From the sequence record OR258281.1: a stretch of 64,000 nucleotides of DNA; one strand, given 5' to 3'. Position numbers and translations under genes: made by a program. Every line of letters starts with the position of its first letter. Within the stretch, counting starts at the first letter, position 1. Under the pieces are notes generated by a model that was not told the DNA's origin, searched no databases, and saw only the letters and a program-made list of their open reading frames with translations. Below are positions 4,657 through 64,000 of the stretch, piece after piece.

Positions 4657-4686
4657 TGAAACATGTCGGCATTATATGCTATACTA
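4657..4686 (+). promoter_or_regulatory. Phage promoter TGAAAC(G/A)-N16-TATACTA (copy 1)
   Basis: TGAAACA 4657-4663, TATACT 4680-4685, same spacing as four other copies. Confidence 0.65.
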
Positions 4687-14752: not shown

Positions 14753-15230
14753 AACTGAAACCTCAAATCATCTGATGCTTCATACTTCATTTTGTGTAAA
14801 TGTTGACCTGATTAATCAGATGGCCTATGATGTTCTTAAGGATCATTATAATGAGTACTTGAAGAATTTCAGAACTAAAATTCTGATGTTCACCCGTACT
14901 CCCAAAGATTTTGATACCTTTATCACTGGCAGTATGGCTCATTATGCTTTTGTTCAGGTACTTCGTGGTAAACCTTATATTGGTCATACATATAATTATC
15001 AGGTATCTGCTAAGCATCATCCTAAGTTGAGTGCTAAAGAAAAAGAACTACTTGCTATTGCAGCTAAGTACTCTAGAGCAAGATTTTTGTACGATAAGTA
15101 CATTAACCGGATTAAAAAGTACGCAGAATATCCTTACCAATTACACGAAGAAGATATTAAGAATTTTGAATACTTCGACGAAAGTAATAATGAAATAGTT
15201 GAGTTTGTCAAGAACTATAACACTCCATAG
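14730..15230 (+). CDS. Hypothetical protein
   Basis: Likely ATG 14730; 166 aa. Confidence 0.7.
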   Translation: MKFKVLTETETSNHLMLHTSFCVNVDLINQMAYDVLKDHYNEYLKNFRTKILMFTRTPKDFDTFITGSMAHYAFVQVLRGKPYIGHTYNYQVSAKHHPKLSAKEKELLAIAAKYSRARFLYDKYINRIKKYAEYPYQLHEEDIKNFEYFDESNNEIVEFVKNYNTP

Positions 15231-15238
15231 GTGATGAG

Positions 15239-15493
15239 ATGCAACCGCATAAAAGTACTGTTCCTCCGACTAAACCACTTAAAACAAGAAAAAAACGTAC
15301 TGGACCAATGACCAAAGAAAAACTTGGTTCTGAATTACGTATTGGTGAATATGTTCAGAGACCTGACGGTACTTTTATGAACATTTCAGATATTGAAAAT
15401 AAGTACTTCTATCTCATTGTACGGACCTTTACTGGTGATAAACTAAAAATTGGCACTGATGAGGTTGTAGTAGTACAAATATACAAGGAATAG
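15239..15493 (+). CDS. Hypothetical basic protein
   Basis: 84 aa, GGTGA SD. Confidence 0.7.
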   Translation: MQPHKSTVPPTKPLKTRKKRTGPMTKEKLGSELRIGEYVQRPDGTFMNISDIENKYFYLIVRTFTGDKLKIGTDEVVVVQIYKE

Positions 15494-48219: not shown

Positions 48220-49507
48220 TCAAAATACTGATCAAGTAGAAAAACAAATTGTAAAACATTATGCTGGAAGTATTGCATATGGTACTAACACACCATCATC
48301 AGACACCGACTTTCGTGGTATCTTTCTGGCACAGAAGAAATTTATTCTTACTCCGTTCTTTAATGTTCGTGAAGTACAAGATACTACTGAAGAAGATACA
48401 AAATTTTATGAACTGAATCAGTACATGAAACTTTATCTGGACGCAAACCCTAATATTCTTGAATCATTATGGGTTGATGACAAATTCATTACTCACCGAA
48501 CTCCAGAATATGACCTTCTTCGTTCCCATCGTGAGACACTGTTAAGTACTAAGCTGGCATTCACATACACGGGCTATGCACACAACCAAGCAACGCGTAT
48601 GAAGAATCACCACGGATGGATGGATAAAGAGCGTAAAGGCGTACAGGAGCTACAGGCTATTGTAGATTCAATGCCATGTATTCAAATTATGGAATGGATT
48701 AAAGATACATTCCCTGAATATGTATTCAAGCAGGTTAACTTTGATAAAGCAAAAGACAAATATGTTAAGACTGTGGTTAAAACAGAAAAATACATGCGTA
48801 TTCATGCATTACAAATGCTTAGCCTTCAGCCATTACAACAGTACCATTTTATTAAGCTAGTACATAACTATCTTCCACATCAGGTACTGGACCGTGATTT
48901 CAGTATTATGGATTACAACTCAGGGTACGAACTAATTCCATATGGTGAAAACATTTTTGCAGTAGTACGAAAATCTGAAGGTAAATGTATTAACTCTGAC
49001 GGTAGTATTCATAAGATTGATACTTCCAATCGTTCACCTGAAGAAATTAAACAACAGCCATGCCTGATTGTCAAATTCAACAAAGATGAGTACCTGAAAA
49101 GTTCTGATAATCGTAAGAACTATCATCGATGGAAGGAAAACCGAAATTCAGATCGTGCAGTTCTTGAACTTGAAAATGGATATGATACTAAACATGCCAT
49201 GCATGTAGTACGTCTCATGCGTACTGCAAAAGAAGCATTGAGTACTGGAACCATTAATGTATTCCGTCCAGATGCTAAAGAACTTTTGGAAATCCGCAGT
49301 GGATCGTGGTCGTTTGATGAAATGATGCAGTACTGGAAGGAGATGGAAAATGAAATTCGTGAAGTTCATTATAAGAACTCTGTTCTTCCGTCTAAACCAA
49401 ATATCAAATTAGCTTCGAAAGTACTAATGGATATTCGTGAATTACAGTGGTACAGCAGTAATAAAACTACTTTTACTATTAAATTAAATAACATTTGGAG
49501 AAAGTAA
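48212..49507 (+). CDS. Pol-beta superfamily nucleotidyltransferase (RlaP/RNA-repair type)
   Basis: AGSIAYGTNTPSSDTDFRGIF, NPNILESL, YDTKHAMHVVRL, ELLEIRSG. Confidence 0.85.
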   Translation: MNNQNTDQVEKQIVKHYAGSIAYGTNTPSSDTDFRGIFLAQKKFILTPFFNVREVQDTTEEDTKFYELNQYMKLYLDANPNILESLWVDDKFITHRTPEYDLLRSHRETLLSTKLAFTYTGYAHNQATRMKNHHGWMDKERKGVQELQAIVDSMPCIQIMEWIKDTFPEYVFKQVNFDKAKDKYVKTVVKTEKYMRIHALQMLSLQPLQQYHFIKLVHNYLPHQVLDRDFSIMDYNSGYELIPYGENIFAVVRKSEGKCINSDGSIHKIDTSNRSPEEIKQQPCLIVKFNKDEYLKSSDNRKNYHRWKENRNSDRAVLELENGYDTKHAMHVVRLMRTAKEALSTGTINVFRPDAKELLEIRSGSWSFDEMMQYWKEMENEIREVHYKNSVLPSKPNIKLASKVLMDIRELQWYSSNKTTFTIKLNNIWRK

Positions 49508-54688: not shown

Positions 54689-55324
54689 ATGGGATATAAA
54701 AGTATCGCTAAATTCGAAGTTCAGGAAATCATTAAGTTAATCAACTCACCAGGGCAGGTGGCAATCATTAAAGGTCATCGCGTCCGTGTAAGTGGTGCAC
54801 GATTACAGAACTTTGCAGTTAACGGTACTGACTGTATCTGTTGTGGTGCAAAAGGTAAGTACTTTTCATTAGAATCTAATGGAGGTGGTTACCATCTTAA
54901 TTTATACGCAGTAAACCAGTATGGCAAAGAAGTTATGATGACTCGTGACCATATTAAACTTAAATCATTGGGTGGTCTTGATACTGTTGAGAACTATACC
55001 CCGATGTGTGACCAATGTAATAATAAAAGGGCTAATATCTACCCTGAGTTACAGGACTTTCTTAATGCATATCATAATGGTACTTTAATCACTCCGAAAG
55101 AACACAATCGGTTACTTAAAGGATTAGAACCCAAGAAACAAGACCACAGACCTAATTCTGAAAAATCATTTGAGGAACTTGGTAGTAGGGCACAAAGAGC
55201 AATGATCTATAAATGGAGAATTGCAAGCTGTTACTCTCATGTACCTTTGTACTGGCGACACGGTTATGGTCGTGAGAAAGAAGTACATGTTGAAGTACCA
55301 GAAAATTTAACTGAAACGTTTTAA
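54689..55324 (+). CDS. HNH endonuclease
   Basis: CICC...TRDHIKLKSLGGLDTVENYTPMCDQCNNKRAN. Confidence 0.85.
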   Translation: MGYKSIAKFEVQEIIKLINSPGQVAIIKGHRVRVSGARLQNFAVNGTDCICCGAKGKYFSLESNGGGYHLNLYAVNQYGKEVMMTRDHIKLKSLGGLDTVENYTPMCDQCNNKRANIYPELQDFLNAYHNGTLITPKEHNRLLKGLEPKKQDHRPNSEKSFEELGSRAQRAMIYKWRIASCYSHVPLYWRHGYGREKEVHVEVPENLTETF

Positions 55325-55341
55325 CAATATATTCTATACTA
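55312..55341 (+). promoter_or_regulatory. Phage promoter (copy 5), pointing into the non-coding region
   Basis: TGAAACG 55312-55318 (in the last HNH codons), N16, TATACT 55335-55340. Confidence 0.8.
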
Positions 55342-55342
55342 T

Positions 55343-55370
55343 AAGGGAGAAGGTAACACTTCTCCTTTTT
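55343..55370 (+). terminator. Terminator-like hairpin at the predicted transcription start
   Basis: AAGGGAGAAG-GTAACA-CTTCTCCTTTTT. Confidence 0.65.
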
Positions 55371-56040
55371 CAATTCTGACTGGTGTACCCGTTAGTCGTG
55401 TTAAGTACTTAAGAGCTAGTACTTAGTTGGTACAATATAATAAACCTGATCCTATCGAAAAGTAGATGGCAGATGAGTAGTCCAGACAGTACGATGAGCA
55501 AATAAAACCCGTGTAAATTACTCCAAGCGAATGCAGAGGCCACGGCAATCAGGCTCAATAAAGGCGAGAGAAAACATTATCGCCCTTGATAGAGATTTAG
55601 GTCTAAAACCCTACCATGTTGAAAGGGAACCAATACATTTATGTATTGGTATTATAAAGTACTGCTGAATTAGTATTTTATAAAAGCGTAGTGATGAGCT
55701 ACGACCGTTGTATAAGACCGAGGTAACTGGAAACCGGACAACCCGCCAGTGCCTGTAATTGGATAAGATAGATTCGTCCAAATATTACAGAATCCTTGAA
55801 TTCAGAATGTTAATGACTACCAACGTCAAATTATTGATTTCTTCCTCCTTGCGGGGGATGGAAATGTACAAACAAACCACGTCAAGTAGTAATTGCTGTT
55901 AAAGCTTTTAGTAGTTTTAAAATCAATTATAATGAATTGAATGAGAAATGAATGAACGTAGTGAATTCATTACGAATGAAAATTCTTGACTTACGTAGTA
56001 AGGCAATCAAAAAGGCTAAATAGTTCAGTACTAAAACTCC
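55371..56040 (+). ncRNA. Putative large structured non-coding RNA (alternatively replication origin)
   Basis: No ORF of 60 aa or more on either strand; 45-47% GC in sampled lines; at least seven hairpins, several needing G-U pairs; GAATGA-type iterations at 55931-55980. Confidence 0.5.
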
Positions 56041-56055
56041 TATGAGGTTTTAATA

Positions 56056-56496
56056 ATGGATGAATTTAACCCTAATGATCTTAGATCAATGATGGATTAT
56101 GTGGAACAAGAAGAGTCCAGTAATTCAGATGAAGCACTACTTAAATTTGTAGAGAACTCATTATTTCTTGAGTCACAAGCACACCACTGGCATCTGCAAT
56201 GTGGTAATTATGCTAAGCATATGGAACTTGATGAGTTCTACAAGGGATTCCCTGAATTTGTTGATACTTTTATTGAAGGTATGATGAATTCTCGTGGTCC
56301 TATACAAAGCACTGGAGCATCTTATGTGTTCCAGCCATTGAGTTCTGTTATTGAAGTACTTCAGAACTATAAGCAACAATGTGTAGCAGTACACGGCGTG
56401 TTAGAACAGGAAGAAGATTTTGGTTCAGTAAACGCCATTGAGGATATTATAAGTTTTGTTGACAGTATCCTATATAAACTAAAAGTACTAAAATAA
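56056..56496 (+). CDS. Ferritin/Dps-like four-helix protein (DUF5856-like)
   Basis: QAHHWHLQ...YAKHMELDEFY...DTFIE...YKL pattern. Confidence 0.75.
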   Translation: MDEFNPNDLRSMMDYVEQEESSNSDEALLKFVENSLFLESQAHHWHLQCGNYAKHMELDEFYKGFPEFVDTFIEGMMNSRGPIQSTGASYVFQPLSSVIEVLQNYKQQCVAVHGVLEQEEDFGSVNAIEDIISFVDSILYKLKVLK

Positions 56497-56500
56497 TATT

Positions 56501-56530
56501 AAGGACTCTATATGAGTCCTTTTCTTTTTT
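56501..56530 (+). terminator. Intrinsic terminator
   Basis: AAGGACTC-TATAT-GAGTCCTT then T-rich run. Confidence 0.8.
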
Positions 56531-61462: not shown

Positions 61463-61992
61463 ATTATGCTCATTACAAGTTAATAAGTACTTTTCTTGAC
61501 GTAATTATTAATGGTTCTGGTATTAATAAAAGAAAAGCTATTCATGAATTGTATTGGAAGACATATCAGGTACAACTGAATACATTACATGATTTCTCAC
61601 TTGAATATCAGTATGATTCTTGGATTATGAATGTTTATGATTTTCATTACAACAAAGGGTTAAGTGAGTACTTTAAAGTTGAAATAAAAGAACATATCTA
61701 TAATTCTGTTGGTATATTTAACGGCAAAGACCAAAAATTATCCAATCTTTGGATAAGGCAGAATAATGTTTTTGTTTTCAGTGATGAAAATGACAATAAA
61801 AACAAATATTCTCCAAATTCAGCCTTGACTATTCCTGTTGATGATGGTCTAATTAATAAAGAAGACATGTTTAACATTTCAATGTTGTCTCCTGTATACT
61901 TTAGTCCTGAGCAGATTAATCTAGGTATTTTTCTGTACAAGTACTTAAAGAATAAAAATCAGAATTTTTTAATTAACTACTATATTGGGTGA
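61432..61992 (+). CDS. FN-motif family small protein
   Basis: NKEDMFNISMLSPVYFSPEQI; start uncertain. Confidence 0.7.
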   Translation: MGEDHPEIPLDYAHYKLISTFLDVIINGSGINKRKAIHELYWKTYQVQLNTLHDFSLEYQYDSWIMNVYDFHYNKGLSEYFKVEIKEHIYNSVGIFNGKDQKLSNLWIRQNNVFVFSDENDNKNKYSPNSALTIPVDDGLINKEDMFNISMLSPVYFSPEQINLGIFLYKYLKNKNQNFLINYYIG

Positions 61993-61995
61993 ACT

Positions 61996-62493
61996 ATGTT
62001 TAAGAAAATCGTAATGGTTACACTGGCAGTACTGGCAATCTCTGCATGTGACGACAAAAAGCAACAGAATGTACAACAGCAGTACCCACAGAATCAACAG
62101 GTGCAAAACCAGCAGTATCAAGATCAACAGCCACAGCAGGTATATGTACAGCAGCAGCCAGGACAGCAACCTGTAACTGTAATTAACCAGCAACCATCGC
62201 ACGATAATGGTTTGGCAACTGCGGTGGTAGCAGGAGCAGCGGGTTATTACATGGGCCGGAACAGTAATAACTCAAATTATGATCGTAACCGTTATGATGA
62301 CCGTGATCGTTCGTATAATAACCGTACTGTTAAGAACCGTACCGTAATTAATAACTATACAATTAATCAGGCTCCTAAACAGCAGAAGTCCAGTACTTAT
62401 TACGGTTCAAGTTCAAAAAGTACTACATCCGTCTCAAGTTCTAGCTCTAAACCACGTAGTGTTTACAGCAAAGTATTCAACAAGAGACGTTAA
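61996..62493 (+). CDS. Gln-rich lipoprotein with glycine-zipper segment
   Basis: LAISAC lipobox; Q-rich tract; AVVAGAAGYYMG; RYDDRDR and S-rich tail. Confidence 0.75.
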   Translation: MFKKIVMVTLAVLAISACDDKKQQNVQQQYPQNQQVQNQQYQDQQPQQVYVQQQPGQQPVTVINQQPSHDNGLATAVVAGAAGYYMGRNSNNSNYDRNRYDDRDRSYNNRTVKNRTVINNYTINQAPKQQKSSTYYGSSSKSTTSVSSSSSKPRSVYSKVFNKRR

Positions 62494-62495
62494 TT

Positions 62496-62915
62496 ATGAC
62501 TATTTTTAAAGTATGGCTAGTGTATGCTTTAATTCTAATAGGGTCTCTTTATGGTTGTTTTCATTTGATGCATAATGATCCAGATCGTATTGAACATCCA
62601 TACACAATGAAGGTACTACGAATCATCCAGGAAGACCATAAATCAAGTACTAACTATCGCGGAGTATTTCAGATGGAAAGCGGTAAAGTAGTAGATTTTA
62701 GTGTTACTGCGTCAGTATTCGTTAAGTACCAACCGGGTGATACTATTAGTTTTAACCTAAGTAACAGAGAACTAGGTATAGATAATAGTGAAAATAGTAC
62801 CTATGCCTTTTTTGTTTTTATTTGGTGCTTTATTTTCGGATTTTTTGGTGCTGTATTAATAACTGAAAAAATTGAACCCAAAATTACAAGAAAACGACTG
62901 TATAACAATAGATAA
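62496..62915 (+). CDS. Two-TM membrane protein with soluble beta domain
   Basis: N- and C-terminal TM segments. Confidence 0.75.
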   Translation: MTIFKVWLVYALILIGSLYGCFHLMHNDPDRIEHPYTMKVLRIIQEDHKSSTNYRGVFQMESGKVVDFSVTASVFVKYQPGDTISFNLSNRELGIDNSENSTYAFFVFIWCFIFGFFGAVLITEKIEPKITRKRLYNNR

Positions 62916-62918
62916 CTT

Positions 62919-62949
62919 AAAAAGGTACTCAAATTGAGTACCTTTTTTT
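62919..62949 (+). terminator. Intrinsic terminator
   Basis: AAAAAGGTACTCA-AAT-TGAGTACCTTTTTTT. Confidence 0.85.
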
Positions 62950-62967
62950 ATTGGAGAAAATATAATA

Positions 62968-64000
62968 ATGAATCTGATTAAAGACTCTCGGGCATTAGTA
63001 ACTGTACGTACTATTAACAAAATTCTTCCTATTCCTGGTGCTGACTTTATTATGGAAGCACATATTGACGGATGGAGTTGTGTAGTAAAGAAAGATGAAT
63101 TCAAAGAAGGTGATTACTGTTTGTACTTCGAAATTGATTCATTCCTTCCGGCTAATGATCCTAAATTCCTGTTCCTTCGTAAAAATGGTGTAAAAACTGA
63201 TGATACTGGTGCAGAACGTATTCGTCTTCGTTCTATTAAACTTAAAGGTATCATTTCTCAAGGATTAGCACTTCCTTTAACGGTACTTGACGAACAAACA
63301 GTTCAAGAACTACTAATGGTAGTGGATTATAGTTCATATGATACTATTGATAATCATGCTATTGATGCAATGTATGAAGCACTGGAAACTGAACGTTATG
63401 GTATTGAAGAATTCCTGAACGTTACTAAGTACGAACGTCCAGACGAAAAGAATGGTGGTGCTGGTAATGCTAAAACTGCTGGTAATTTCCCATTAAGTAT
63501 TCCTAAAACCGACGAAGATCGTTTGCAGAACGTATATGGAACTCTTAGTACTCATTTTCAGGATGTTTATTTTCGTCCTAGTCTCAAGCTTGATGGTAGC
63601 AGTATTACTATTGGGTACTTCAGTGACCCGAGTTATTTCCTTACTAAGCTTGATGATGAAATGATTACGTACAATGAAGAAAAACAAGAACTAGAATGTA
63701 CTCCAATTCCATATCCTCATAATTATGGTACTTCTCAGGTAATTGTATGTTCACGTAATCTTGCGTTGAAGTACACACCTGAATCGCGGTTCTGGCAGGG
63801 AGTAAACAATAATGATCTTGCCACTCGCCTAAAAGAGTACTGTGAAGAATATGATGTACAACTTGCAGTACAGGGTGAACTAATGGGTCCGGGGATTCAG
63901 GGTAACCGTGAAAAACTGGAACAGTACGACATTTATGCATTCCGTATTTGGGATATTACTAATAAATGCTTCCTTGATGATAGTGAATTCATGGAGACAT
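62968..64000 (+). CDS. RNA ligase (Rnl2/DRB0094-like) with N-terminal OB-fold, 3'-truncated by window edge (not in ORF track)
   Basis: My translation: MNLIKDSRALVTVRTI...YFEIDSFLP...IKLKGIISQGLALP...PKTDEDRLQN...KLDGSS...CSRNL...QGELMGPGIQGN. Confidence 0.9.
   Translation, partial: MNLIKDSRALVTVRTINKILPIPGADFIMEAHIDGWSCVVKKDEFKEGDYCLYFEIDSFLPANDPKFLFLRKNGVKTDDTGAERIRLRSIKLKGIISQGLALPLTVLDEQTVQELLMVVDYSSYDTIDNHAIDAMYEALETERYGIEEFLNVTKYERPDEKNGGAGNAKTAGNFPLSIPKTDEDRLQNVYGTLSTHFQDVYFRPSLKLDGSSITIGYFSDPSYFLTKLDDEMITYNEEKQELECTPIPYPHNYGTSQVIVCSRNLALKYTPESRFWQGVNNNDLATRLKEYCEEYDVQLAVQGELMGPGIQGNREKLEQYDIYAFRIWDITNKCFLDDSEFMET

Follow-up and report, generated by a model that had tools for sequence, protein, structure and literature searches.

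What occupies the longest stretch without a gene in a 64,000-nt segment of the Xanthomonas jumbo phage XaC1 (OR258281.1; the whole segment is called the window below)? When ORFs of at least 60 aa on both strands are considered, this stretch covers 682 nt (55374-56055), and the sole other uncovered stretch is 63105-63492, where a + strand ORF begins that runs past the window end. GenBank OR258281.1 annotates no feature between the HNH endonuclease gene (54689-55324) and the dps/ferritin-like gene (56056-56496), both + strand ORFs; the former is the upstream neighbor, lies outside the unit described here and has a stop codon that overlaps the start of the putative promoter. A preliminary description had called this the only long gene-free stretch of the window, with a promoter at its start, and this held (55325-56055 is the longest ORF-free interval). 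Its reading of the region as GC-rich, from two sampled lines of 45-47% GC, held only locally, as the GC content of the region is 36.0% vs 33.8% for the window, with 100-nt bins from 26 to 44%. We lean towards the view that 55312-56009 is the gene for a large structured non-coding RNA (ncRNA), apparently undescribed, which is one of five paralogues in XaC1 and acts as a folded RNA; its transcription and function are inferred.

The locus belongs to a family of non-coding units of ~600-720 nt, of which the window member (55312-56009) would yield an RNA of ~650-660 nt. Using blastn and nhmmer, 65 distinct full-length copies were found. The family is held by 70-71 of 50,697 GenBank phage records, all of them RaK2/121Q/GAP32-like jumbo phages, and also by metagenomic contigs. 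Hosts of these phages fall into nine genera, namely Escherichia, Klebsiella, Salmonella, Erwinia, Yersinia, Serratia, Cronobacter, Pectobacterium and Xanthomonas. Most records with full-length matches carry the unit at 4-5 places, and the four to five copies per genome are co-oriented, 34-94 kb apart and syntenic across genera. XaC1 has five, all on the + strand, at 14.8, 48.6, 117.3, 209.0 and 303.2 kb, and five copies each are also present in at least eight contigs of ~350-380 kb. The probability of a minimum gap at least as large was 0.001-0.02 in four genomes and 0.07 in XaC1, although these genomes share ancestry and the values thus amount to one observation only. Between XaC1 and the enterobacterial phages, DNA similarity spans the non-coding unit but not the flanking genes, and E. 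coli 121Q-like phages match the segment 55443-55512 with 90% identity. Some lineage-specific features are common to all five XaC1 copies, which indicates sequence exchange between copies. GenBank records for these loci are blank or filled with spurious small ORFs; all five loci of phage CBB, for example, are unannotated gaps of 660-790 nt. Among the 120 pattern matches examined from bacterial and archaeal genomes, which are only part of those genomes' possible matches, nhmmer recognized no true member, and absence is thus unproven; ACCCGT-N-ACGGCAAT proved insufficiently specific as a pattern, since it gave chance matches only.

Selection acts on the folded + strand RNA, and maintains at least 16 helices, three pseudoknots and about a dozen invariant unpaired motifs. 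Across the 65 distinct copies, 16 helices comprising 74 pairs are 97.8% canonical, with compensatory changes at 52 pairs, against 33-42% pairing and 10-17 compensated pairs in slid-partner controls. An independent count on the 3′ core (32 sequences) agrees: pairing is 99.0% and 16 of 23 pairs have changed on both sides; its covariation score of 0.633 compares with 0.234 after shuffling, none of 500 shuffles equalled it, and slid partners reached at most 0.136. By mutual information, the 11 highest-ranked column pairs, and ~28 among the first 40, change as Watson-Crick swaps and stack into helices. Family-wide, G-U combinations fill 268 cells on the + strand and A-C combinations only 27, a ratio of about ten to one, and the + strand RNA is therefore the selected molecule; the proposal in the preliminary description that G-U pairs point to selection on RNA thus held across the family. 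The + strand also folds better than its shuffles (z = -4.56, with 0 of 100 as good), vs z = -2.38 for the - strand. Mutual information and per-helix counts were used in place of RNAalifold, which recovered few helices from the whole 35-sequence MAFFT alignment because variable hairpins misalign; because the RNA is AU-rich, simply seeking the longest duplex that two regions can form, G-U pairs included, told little. The entire unit, including its 3′ tail, behaves as RNA, and this conservation pattern implies that the phage needs the folded molecule.

Near the 5′ end, AAGGGAGAAG/CTTCTCCTTT make a hairpin with a U run behind it (55343-55368; inverted repeat and alignments); this element is variable and missing in some paralogues. 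The 5′ domain (55376-55492) was recognized first by mutual information and then by compensatory changes in its helices. Here, pseudoknot PK1 pairs CUGACUGG (55376-83) with CCAGACAG (55482-89) and has 4 covarying pairs, the latter strand being located in the loop of helix GUA/UAC (55477-79/55490-92; 2 covarying pairs). Within the same domain lie the expanded hairpin H2 (base 55384-87/55431-34; 4 covarying pairs) and hairpin H3 with loop GAAAAGUA (55446-48/55470-72 and 55454-56/55465-67; 5 covarying pairs). The central domain (55495-55613) has five helices, UGAGC/GCUCA (55495-99/55553-57), CCGU/ACGG (55509-12/55542-45), AUC/GAU (55548-50/55594-96), GGCGA/UCGCC (55563-67/55580-84) and UAGG/CCUA (55598-601/55610-13), joined by the invariant junctions ACGGCAAU, AUAAAG and GAUAGA; all five pairs of GGCGA/UCGCC show compensatory changes (111 cells). 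Next come a conserved AAAGGGA (55622-28), the hairpin ACCAAUACAU/AUGUAUUGGU (55629-50) and a 12-bp hairpin supported by both inverted repeat and covariation (55652-63/55672-83). The loop of this hairpin, CUGAAUU (55665-71), is the 5′ strand of PK3 and pairs with AAUUCAG (55799-805). This 7-bp loop-strand pairing occurs in 11 complementary variants in a hairpin-loop-anchored test, and its sequence differs in each of the five XaC1 copies.

The 3′ core (55687-55805) consists of helix CGUAG/CUACG (55687-91/55699-703), pseudoknot PK2 (GUUGU/ACAAC, 55707-11/55738-42), helices CGAGG/CCUUG (55719-23/55794-98) and ACUGG/CCAGU (55726-30/55746-50), and the hairpin CUGUAAU-UGGA/UCCA-AUUACAG (55753-90), with the invariant motifs GACCGUUG and AACCCGC. 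Beyond it, the conserved GACUACCAACGUCAA (55815-29) and a second motif, ACAAACCACGUCAA (55872-85), supported by a direct repeat and alignments, flank a G/C hairpin, UCCUCC/GGGGGA with outer AUUUC/GAAAU (55837-65). The same interval, 55815-55885, is the site at which 40 of the 65 relatives have an inserted hairpin and U run, at least 22 of which resemble intrinsic terminators; it is degenerate in the window copy. The AU-rich 3′ tail (55886-56009), with 26% GC at 55912-56011, contains hairpins, AAUUCUUGAC, GGCAAUC, an 11-nt tandem of two copies (55934-55; TRF score 37) and the terminal hairpin CUUAC/GUAAG (55990-56002). As read by eye in alignments, the terminal hairpin covaries in the family (CAUUC/GAAUG, CUAAC/GUUAG, CUUGC/GCAAG, CAAUC/GAUUG, CUCGC/GCGAG). 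The preliminary description had placed seven hairpins in the region; all are present at those positions, and each has a counterpart at the equivalent place in homologues. Covariation backs five of them, by formal counts for GGCGA/TCGCC, the 55652-55683 hairpin, CGTAG/CTACG and CTGTAAT.../...ATTACAG and by eye for CTTAC/GTAAG; the counts left out ACCAATACAT/ATGTATTGGT (55629-55650) and the 55837-55865 hairpin.

The putative promoter, TGAAACG-N16-TATACT (equivalently TGAAAC-N17-TATACT; 55312-55340, + strand), is inferred to be active from its motif. Matches to TGAAAC-N15-18-TATAMT number five on the + strand of the window vs 0.35 expected, and none of 100 shuffles reached five. The motif precedes all five XaC1 copies, and throughout the family the equivalent place is occupied by TGAAAC/TGGGAC-N16-17-(TGn)TATAAT. 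Most relatives have an extended -10 promoter. Transcription is predicted to start near 55346, an assignment made from sequence alone. No intrinsic terminator of the window copy itself was found ahead of the dps-like gene; the first one on the + strand past the promoter lies at 56501-56521, directly after that gene.

None of the 4,227 models of Rfam 15, which include large ncRNAs, group I/II introns, RNase P, 6S, riboswitches and leaders, matched anywhere in the window at the gathering score; at E ≤ 10 the region gave only scattered matches of 17-22 bits (cut-offs 39-100), and at E ≤ 0.5 nothing was found inside the unit for all five classes of copy (fHe-Yen9-04 and 121Q). ARAGORN detected no tRNA or tmRNA gene in the window. 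A protein-coding gene was rejected: the longest ORFs are 45-56 aa, the four longest have no Pfam match, and indels that are not multiples of three shift the frame between close relatives. The small ORFs placed at these loci by annotators vary from record to record. A group I or II intron was likewise rejected, with separate complete genes as flanks at all loci examined and no model match, and where parts of the RNA looked by eye like the P7/R-S elements of group I, domain V of group II, box C/D or the T-loop, the necessary partner strands or covariation were lacking. No description of this RNA was found in the open-access literature searched, nor any expression data for phages of this clade; subscription-only literature was outside the search. 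The suggestion of the preliminary description that the locus encodes an undescribed phage ncRNA is thus supported, since covarying pairs are plentiful in homologues (52 of 74) and no Rfam family matches, leaving its novelty unrefuted, while the transcript itself remains inferred.

The best reading of the family is a new class of large structured ncRNA, with its promoter, start and ends inferred. Under this reading, host RNA polymerase would initiate at ~55346 from a sigma-70-like promoter, and the RNA would fold during synthesis into a compact tertiary structure. It would then work through its fold, as a protein scaffold, a self-associating particle or a catalyst, rather than serve as a site on the DNA or simply as the leader of an mRNA. 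In favor of this reading, one copy in each of 121Q, CBB and UE-S1 stands alone, as a + strand unit with a terminator of its own amid - strand genes. Copy-specific PK3 pairing may restrict each paralogue to pairing with itself. The XaC1 transcript would probably continue into the dps-like gene, because no terminator lies between them, and the RNA may also serve as the 5′ leader of that gene, since the first + strand terminator follows it. Several points weigh against the ncRNA reading. Without its own terminator before the dps-like gene, the window copy could be merely a leader, and the terminator-like insertions of at least 22 copies would remove the conserved 3′ part. No partner protein or target has been identified, and a free RNA leaves the syntenic, co-oriented and widely spaced retention of five copies unexplained.

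The strongest rival, which we nevertheless regard as unlikely, holds that the units are RNA-primed replication origins, the five copies being five origins of a 350-kb genome. In its 3′ part, which is G-rich and AU-rich, the folded transcript would stay on its template as an R-loop, and the R-loop RNA would be processed to a primer for a T4-like replisome, much as ColE1 RNA II or the T4 oriF/oriG transcripts are. The layout speaks somewhat for an origin, with five spaced, co-oriented copies that are syntenic in every genus. Each is a promoter-driven non-coding unit in which ~500 nt of structure precede a conserved CCCC/GGGGGG and the AU-rich stretch (26% GC), genes for a recombination endonuclease and endonuclease VII always adjoin one copy, and one class needs no downstream gene. 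Against this, the hairpins of the AU-rich tail covary, so selection on the tail concerns the RNA as well as any ease of melting of the DNA, and no primer RNA is known to need as many as three pseudoknots and so many invariant nucleotides at junctions. Over 50-60 kb, the GC skew is positive and its cumulative value climbs steadily without an inflection at 55-56 kb, which is a weak test, as skew follows transcription. An iteron origin finds no support, there being no conserved array but only one 2-copy 11-nt tandem, which falls in the variable tail and is not conserved in relatives, and one two-copy 14-nt repeat. The GAATGA-like iterations reported earlier for 55931-55980 consist of this tandem and inverted-repeat arms, and are not iterons. 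The iteron origin that the preliminary description offered as its alternative is unsupported as stated, with neither conserved iterons nor a skew change, but we cannot exclude a transcript-primed origin free of iterons.

Marginally less likely is a cis-acting leader, in which the nascent fold would modify the polymerase (processive antitermination, of which HK022 put and the EAR element are examples) or control the stability or translation of the following genes, and in which the inserted hairpin and U run would be a terminator overridden or regulated by the RNA. In its favor, same-strand genes follow within 0-70 nt in four of the five classes, in class 2 the terminal hairpin, which has GGAG in its loop, borders immediately on the start codon, the terminator-like insertion lies directly past the core in 40 of 65 copies, and nothing stands between the RNA and the dps-like gene in XaC1. 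However, the class-3 copies of 121Q, CBB and UE-S1, each a + strand unit amid - strand genes that ends at a bidirectional terminator with no same-strand gene downstream, keep the full structure. Past the class 1 units lie a hairpin and a new TGTATAAT promoter that would serve the gene after it, and the downstream genes are unrelated from class to class. The unit is also 5-10 times larger than known antitermination RNAs and matches no Rfam cis-regulatory family.

We consider it very unlikely that the unit is a ribozyme or the relic of a mobile RNA, intron-like or associated with a homing endonuclease, that spread to five sites. Its many pseudoknots and invariant junctions do resemble those of large ribozymes, an HNH endonuclease gene lies immediately upstream in XaC1, and sequence has been exchanged among the XaC1 copies. 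However, no Rfam model matches, whether of group I, group II, RNase P, HEARO or another family, complete genes border the units and none is interrupted by them, and their positions are syntenic across genera, which rules out recent mobility. The HNH gene is missing at most other copies, and in phage Munch two genes separate it from the RNA. A non-functional spacer, decayed gene or set of chance hairpins, for which it could be said that annotators left the locus empty or put short hypothetical ORFs there, is all but excluded and is refuted by the covariation counts, given conservation in nine host genera, 52 compensated pairs, invariant motifs and no conserved reading frame.

A bolder reading joins three claims, and as a whole we hold it to be improbable: that the five copies mark out the phage chromosome as RNA-defined landmarks, each pseudoknotted nascent RNA acting at its own locus; that the RNA is the structured primer or licensing element of five origins, or a chromosome-organizing center; and that the copy-specific PK3 code stops cross-pairing among the five RNAs. 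To our knowledge, no such origin or organizer is known in any virus or cell.

For the preferred reading, a large structured ncRNA, the closest known counterparts are GOLLD, ROOL and OLE (PMC12286853, PMC9723947), which are likewise ~600 nt or more in length, have many helices, pseudoknots and conserved unpaired nucleotides, and have neither an ORF nor a known biochemical function; GOLLD and ROOL are also phage-associated. Loop-mediated RNA-RNA contacts matter in this group, and homo-oligomers form (PMC12286853). The jumbo-phage family differs in having no covariance-model match in Rfam 15, in residing in lytic jumbo phages that infect Enterobacterales and Xanthomonas, and in its four to five dispersed, diverged and co-oriented paralogues per genome, with their own promoters and a copy-specific pseudoknot code. 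ColE1 RNA II and the transcripts of T4 oriF (uvsY) and oriG (gene 34) are R-loop primers. Like the RNA proposed here, they are made from a promoter, do not code for protein and measure a few hundred nucleotides, and folding matters for RNA II; T4-like phages use several dispersed origins, and the phages of this family carry T4-like replication and recombination genes. However, no conserved pseudoknotted core is known to be common to those origins, whereas the jumbo-phage unit is conserved as RNA structure throughout, tail included. HK022 put and EAR share with most copies a structured RNA straight after the promoter and before a terminator-like hairpin and same-strand genes, but they measure ~70-120 nt against ~660 nt, and the jumbo-phage unit gives no model match and includes one class without a downstream same-strand gene.

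Putative lncRNAs have been annotated from RNA-seq in the related jumbo phage PA5oct (PMC7318152; MK797984). The PA5oct ncRNAs have no significant match to the family (best nhmmer E = 0.87) and none of its invariant motifs, and homology is not shown. The setting of one of them, ncRNA004, is nonetheless that of the class-3 copies: it is 619 nt long and free of ORFs, its + strand locus is bordered by genes of the - strand, and a CCC/GGG hairpin forms its end.

Large RNAs with such conserved tertiary architecture are rare, and each of RNase P, group I/II introns, tmRNA, OLE, GOLLD and ROOL either gave rise to a field or is still a prominent unsolved problem. We are not aware of another case in which concerted evolution of copies is combined with a copy-specific pseudoknot code, nor of one with regular spacing along a chromosome; this combination and the spacing hint at a function tied to very large phage genomes. 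Lytic jumbo phages that carry the family and infect E. coli, Klebsiella, Salmonella, Erwinia and Xanthomonas are under development for therapy and biocontrol, and the laboratory E. coli systems (121Q, PBECO4, EJP2) make the purpose of a large, ornate phage RNA directly testable by genetics. With five units of ~0.7 kb, ~1% of each 350-kb genome is given to this family.

The gene-free stretch between an HNH endonuclease gene (54689-55324, + strand; CxxC and HNH motifs) and a dps/ferritin-like gene (56056-56496, + strand) carries a structure that is selected on the + strand, as RNA. The evidence lies in its homologues, where compensatory changes on the + strand are abundant. APC-corrected mutual information was first used, without any assumed structure, to rank all column pairs of a 56-sequence alignment; the top 11 pairs and approximately 28 of the top 40 were Watson-Crick swaps stacking into antiparallel helices. 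Across 65 sequences, the 16 helices (74 pairs) were 97.8% canonical, with compensatory double changes at 52 of the 74 pairs (934 cells). With the 3' partner slid by 1-3 columns, pairing was only 33-42% and 10-17 pairs were compensated; shuffled partners gave at most 76.7% pairing and at most 41 compensated pairs. The 16 helices were chosen on the same data, which makes the pairing percentage circular in part but does not touch the mutual-information ranking or the compensatory counts. In a separately built 32-sequence alignment, the 3' core was 99.0% paired, 16 of its 23 pairs had changed on both sides, and its covariation score of 0.633 was reached by none of 500 shuffles (0.234 ± 0.014); slid partners scored no higher than 0.136. 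G-U cells outnumbered A-C cells by 268 to 27, which identifies the + strand as the selected one and favours RNA. The + strand RNA also folded 4.6 sd better than dinucleotide shuffles, and the - strand 2.4 sd better.

By blastn, the query region is 100% identical to Xanthomonas phage XaC1 (OR258281.1, 348,967 bp), a jumbo myovirus of the RaK2/121Q/GAP32 group; record position 117,312 corresponds to window position 55312. The preliminary description had presented the region as the only long gene-free stretch of the window, headed by an exact copy of a phage promoter and dense in hairpins, and all three points held: it is the longest ORF-free interval of the window (682 nt; ORFs of at least 60 aa), TGAAACG-N16-TATACT was found by motif search at 55312-55340 (+), and every hairpin proposed is present in the sequence. 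The claimed GC enrichment held only in part and locally (36.0% against 33.8% for the window, one 100-nt bin reaching 44%), and the "GAATGA iterations" failed as iterons, being a two-copy 11-mer and hairpin arms. The promoter motif occurs five times on the + strand of the window against 0.35 expected; the four other copies of TGAAAC-N17-(C/T)CTATACT lie at 4657, 12219, 17261 and 27293 (+). Judged from sequence alone, these copies would define a phage promoter class common to the RNA genes and to ordinary gene clusters. Every copy of the family is headed by the motif, with an extended -10 element (TGnTATAAT) and TGAAAC 16-17 nt upstream in most relatives.

On the + strand, the promoter is followed by a variable 5' hairpin (55343-68) and by pseudoknot PK1 (55376-83 with 55482-89), which encloses hairpins H2 and H3 of the 5' domain and is of the H type, since its 3' strand sits in the loop of helix 55477-79/55490-92. 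The helices of the central domain (55495-99/55553-57, 55509-12/55542-45, 55548-50/55594-96, 55563-67/55580-84 and 55598-601/55610-13) are followed by two hairpins (55629-50 and 55652-83) and by the 3' core, which consists of helices at 55687-703, 55719-23/55794-98, 55726-30/55746-50 and 55753-90 and contains pseudoknot PK2 (55707-11/55738-42). The third pseudoknot, PK3, joins the loop CUGAAUU (55665-71) to AAUUCAG (55799-805). The core is followed by the motif GACUACCAACGUCAA and a G/C hairpin (55837-65), and these by a second motif, ...ACCACGUCAA, and an AU-rich tail that contains hairpins. The terminal hairpin (55990-56002) covaries strongly across the family when read by eye. The entire unit of ~660 nt, and not the core alone, is therefore under RNA-level selection.

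PK3 was assessed in each sequence by locating the long hairpin upstream of GACCGUUG and checking its loop for complementarity to the post-core strand. A perfect 6-8-mer was present in nearly all copies, in 11 sequence versions that include UUCAUGU:ACAUGAA, AUUGUAU:AUACAAU, GUCGAAU:AUUCGAC and UUCAUACA:UGUAUGAA, and the loops seldom match the strand of copies with another version.

In 62 phage records, blastn matched the region but not its flanking genes. When further members of the family served as queries, 70-71 of 50,697 phage records gave a match, and most records with full-length matches had 4-5 matching places. The hosts are Escherichia, Klebsiella, Salmonella, Erwinia, Yersinia, Serratia, Cronobacter, Pectobacterium and Xanthomonas. 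The syntenic locus in EJP2, Munch, fHe-Yen9-04, XbC2, BF, CBB and GAP32 is either an unannotated gap of 650-700 nt or is filled with short, record-specific "hypothetical" ORFs. The best match in 121Q sits at a non-syntenic site, an 837-nt gap between the endonuclease VII and baseplate genes, and paralogues must therefore exist. Pattern scans of IMG/VR and metagenomes, filtered with nhmmer profiles, yielded 65 distinct full-length copies with a mean pairwise identity of 65% (minimum 51%). In a partial scan of bacterial and archaeal genomes, which does not prove absence, nhmmer confirmed none of at least 120 pattern hits as a true member.

At least eight contigs of 350-380 kb carry five copies each, all on one strand. 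Copies start at 24.5, 93.2, 174.2, 260.3 and 334.7 kb in fHe-Yen9-04 and at 32.3, 94.2, 174.4, 258.1 and 336.3 kb in CBB, where all five loci are unannotated gaps of 660-790 nt. In XaC1 they lie at 14.8, 48.6, 117.3 (the window copy, 55310-56004), 209.0 and 303.2 kb, all +; the paralogues occupy 14,779-15,376, 48,602-49,285, 208,965-209,687 and 303,169-303,901 of the record (loci L529, L528 and L527). The smallest distance between copies is larger than for five points placed at random on a circle (P = 0.001-0.02 in four genomes, 0.07 in XaC1); as the layout is inherited across genomes, this counts as one suggestive observation. Each paralogue class has constant neighbours across genera: class 1 is followed by a Dam methylase cluster and class 2, which includes the window copy, by the dps-like gene, and class 3 comes after endonuclease VII.

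The five XaC1 copies are 63-76% identical. They share features that are absent from other genera: in all five the H2 hairpin is expanded and contains conserved CCCG.UUAGU.GUG and UAAGAG, in four there is an insert in the ACCCGU...ACGG hairpin, and in three the 3' tail is near-identical. These common lineage-specific features indicate that the copies exchange sequence by gene conversion or co-evolve with a common partner. Despite them, the PK3 loop:strand pair differs in all five, which, judged from sequence, looks as if each RNA were selected to pair with itself alone or with its own kind.

A coding role finds no support: the longest ORFs of the unit (45-56 aa) had no match in Pfam, and the lengths of the indels that separate relatives are not divisible by three; in Munch, L049 and XaC1, for example, different frames come after the "start" GGGGGAUG... 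GenBank places short hypothetical ORFs of 27-39 aa on the RNA loci (L004 2244-2546, g159 and g160; L527 2450-2533, XaC1_451; also PHA46, SHEFM2K and other records), which are unconserved and likely mis-annotations, and part of the UE-S1 locus is marked "repeat_region" (L530 649-806). The preliminary description had recognised no tmRNA, RNase P or group I intron pattern, and this was borne out. Rfam 15 returned nothing for the window at gathering score (only noise at E ≤ 10) and nothing for copies of all five classes, and ARAGORN found nothing in the window; by sequence and structure, the RNA is not a member of any curated family. No description of it was found in the open-access literature searched. 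The only RNA-seq-annotated "lncRNAs" in the vicinity of the clade, those of the distantly related jumbo phage PA5oct, have no detectable homology. One of them, ncRNA004 (619-nt "putative lncRNA", MK797984 246,116-246,734; L525 817-1435), resembles a class-3 copy in lying on the + strand between - strand genes and ending in a CCC/GGG hairpin, but its sequence is not significantly similar (E = 0.87); either analogy or a very distant relationship is possible. GOLLD, ROOL and OLE are ornate large RNAs of comparable size and complexity. Because no curated family matches, and because the host range, dispersed multi-copy layout and copy-specific pseudoknot code have, to our knowledge, no counterpart, we rate the family as a new RNA class, its function unknown and its transcription only inferred.

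On balance we lean towards a stand-alone structured ncRNA acting as RNA or RNP, with transcription and function both inferred from sequence alone. The promoter would be used by host sigma-70 polymerase, probably at an early stage. The class-3 copy of 121Q, CBB and UE-S1 lies on the + strand, is flanked by - strand genes and ends at a bidirectional terminator. Class-1 copies end in a hairpin, after which the next gene has a fresh TGTATAAT promoter of its own. The unit can thus be a transcription unit by itself, which speaks against a mere leader. Pseudoknots and invariant junction nucleotides at this density are seen in RNAs that work through a precise three-dimensional fold. A diffusible RNA, however, gives no reason why five syntenic and co-oriented copies, spaced apart, are so strictly kept.

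That retention would be explained by a transcript-primed replication origin, in the manner of ColE1 RNA II or T4 oriF/oriG. The CCCC/GGGGGG element and AU-rich tail are compatible with it, but there are no iterons, a weak GC-skew test shows no change and the tail is kept as RNA hairpins, so we regard an origin as unlikely. We also doubt a cis-acting leader or antiterminator. It would fit the hairpin and U-run insertion that follows the core in 40 of 65 copies, the genes that abut most copies and the absence of a terminator between the XaC1 copy and the dps-like gene, but class 3 contradicts it. The neighbouring HNH gene is the sole positive evidence for a ribozyme or a relic of a mobile element, which we hold to be very improbable, and chance or junk is excluded.

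The stop codon of that HNH gene overlaps the start of the RNA promoter in XaC1. In Salmonella phage Munch two genes stand between it and the RNA, and other copies lack such a gene; it is likely a free-standing homing endonuclease unrelated to the RNA. A second ORF-free candidate (~63,050-64,000, +) was rejected, being a + strand ORF that continues past the end of the window; the ORF tool omits ORFs open at that end, and the stretch therefore appears gene-free. An RNA ligase gene lies just upstream of this ORF (61,886-63,028 of the XaC1 record).

In copies of classes 2 and 4, the hairpin that follows CCAGUG contains the conserved motif AUAGAUCCGUCCAAAAUUUGA (window 55768-55785, AGAUAGAUUCGUCCAAAU). 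Other classes have this motif upstream of the long PK3 hairpin, and it looks like a structural module moved or duplicated within the RNA. Two ...AYCA.CGUCAR motifs, 56 nt apart (55815-55829 and 55872-55885), have U in both (35 sequences) or C in both (21 sequences) at the Y position, a same-direction, non-complementary covariation that might reflect a common partner or mere clade history. Relatives have a gene of ~120 aa (GAP32_164 family) ahead of the dps-like gene, and it begins directly at the terminal hairpin of the RNA. In XaC1 this gene is missing and only ~50 nt are left (56003-56055); a hairpin in this remnant (56036-56054) takes in the GAGG of the ribosome-binding site of the dps-like gene.
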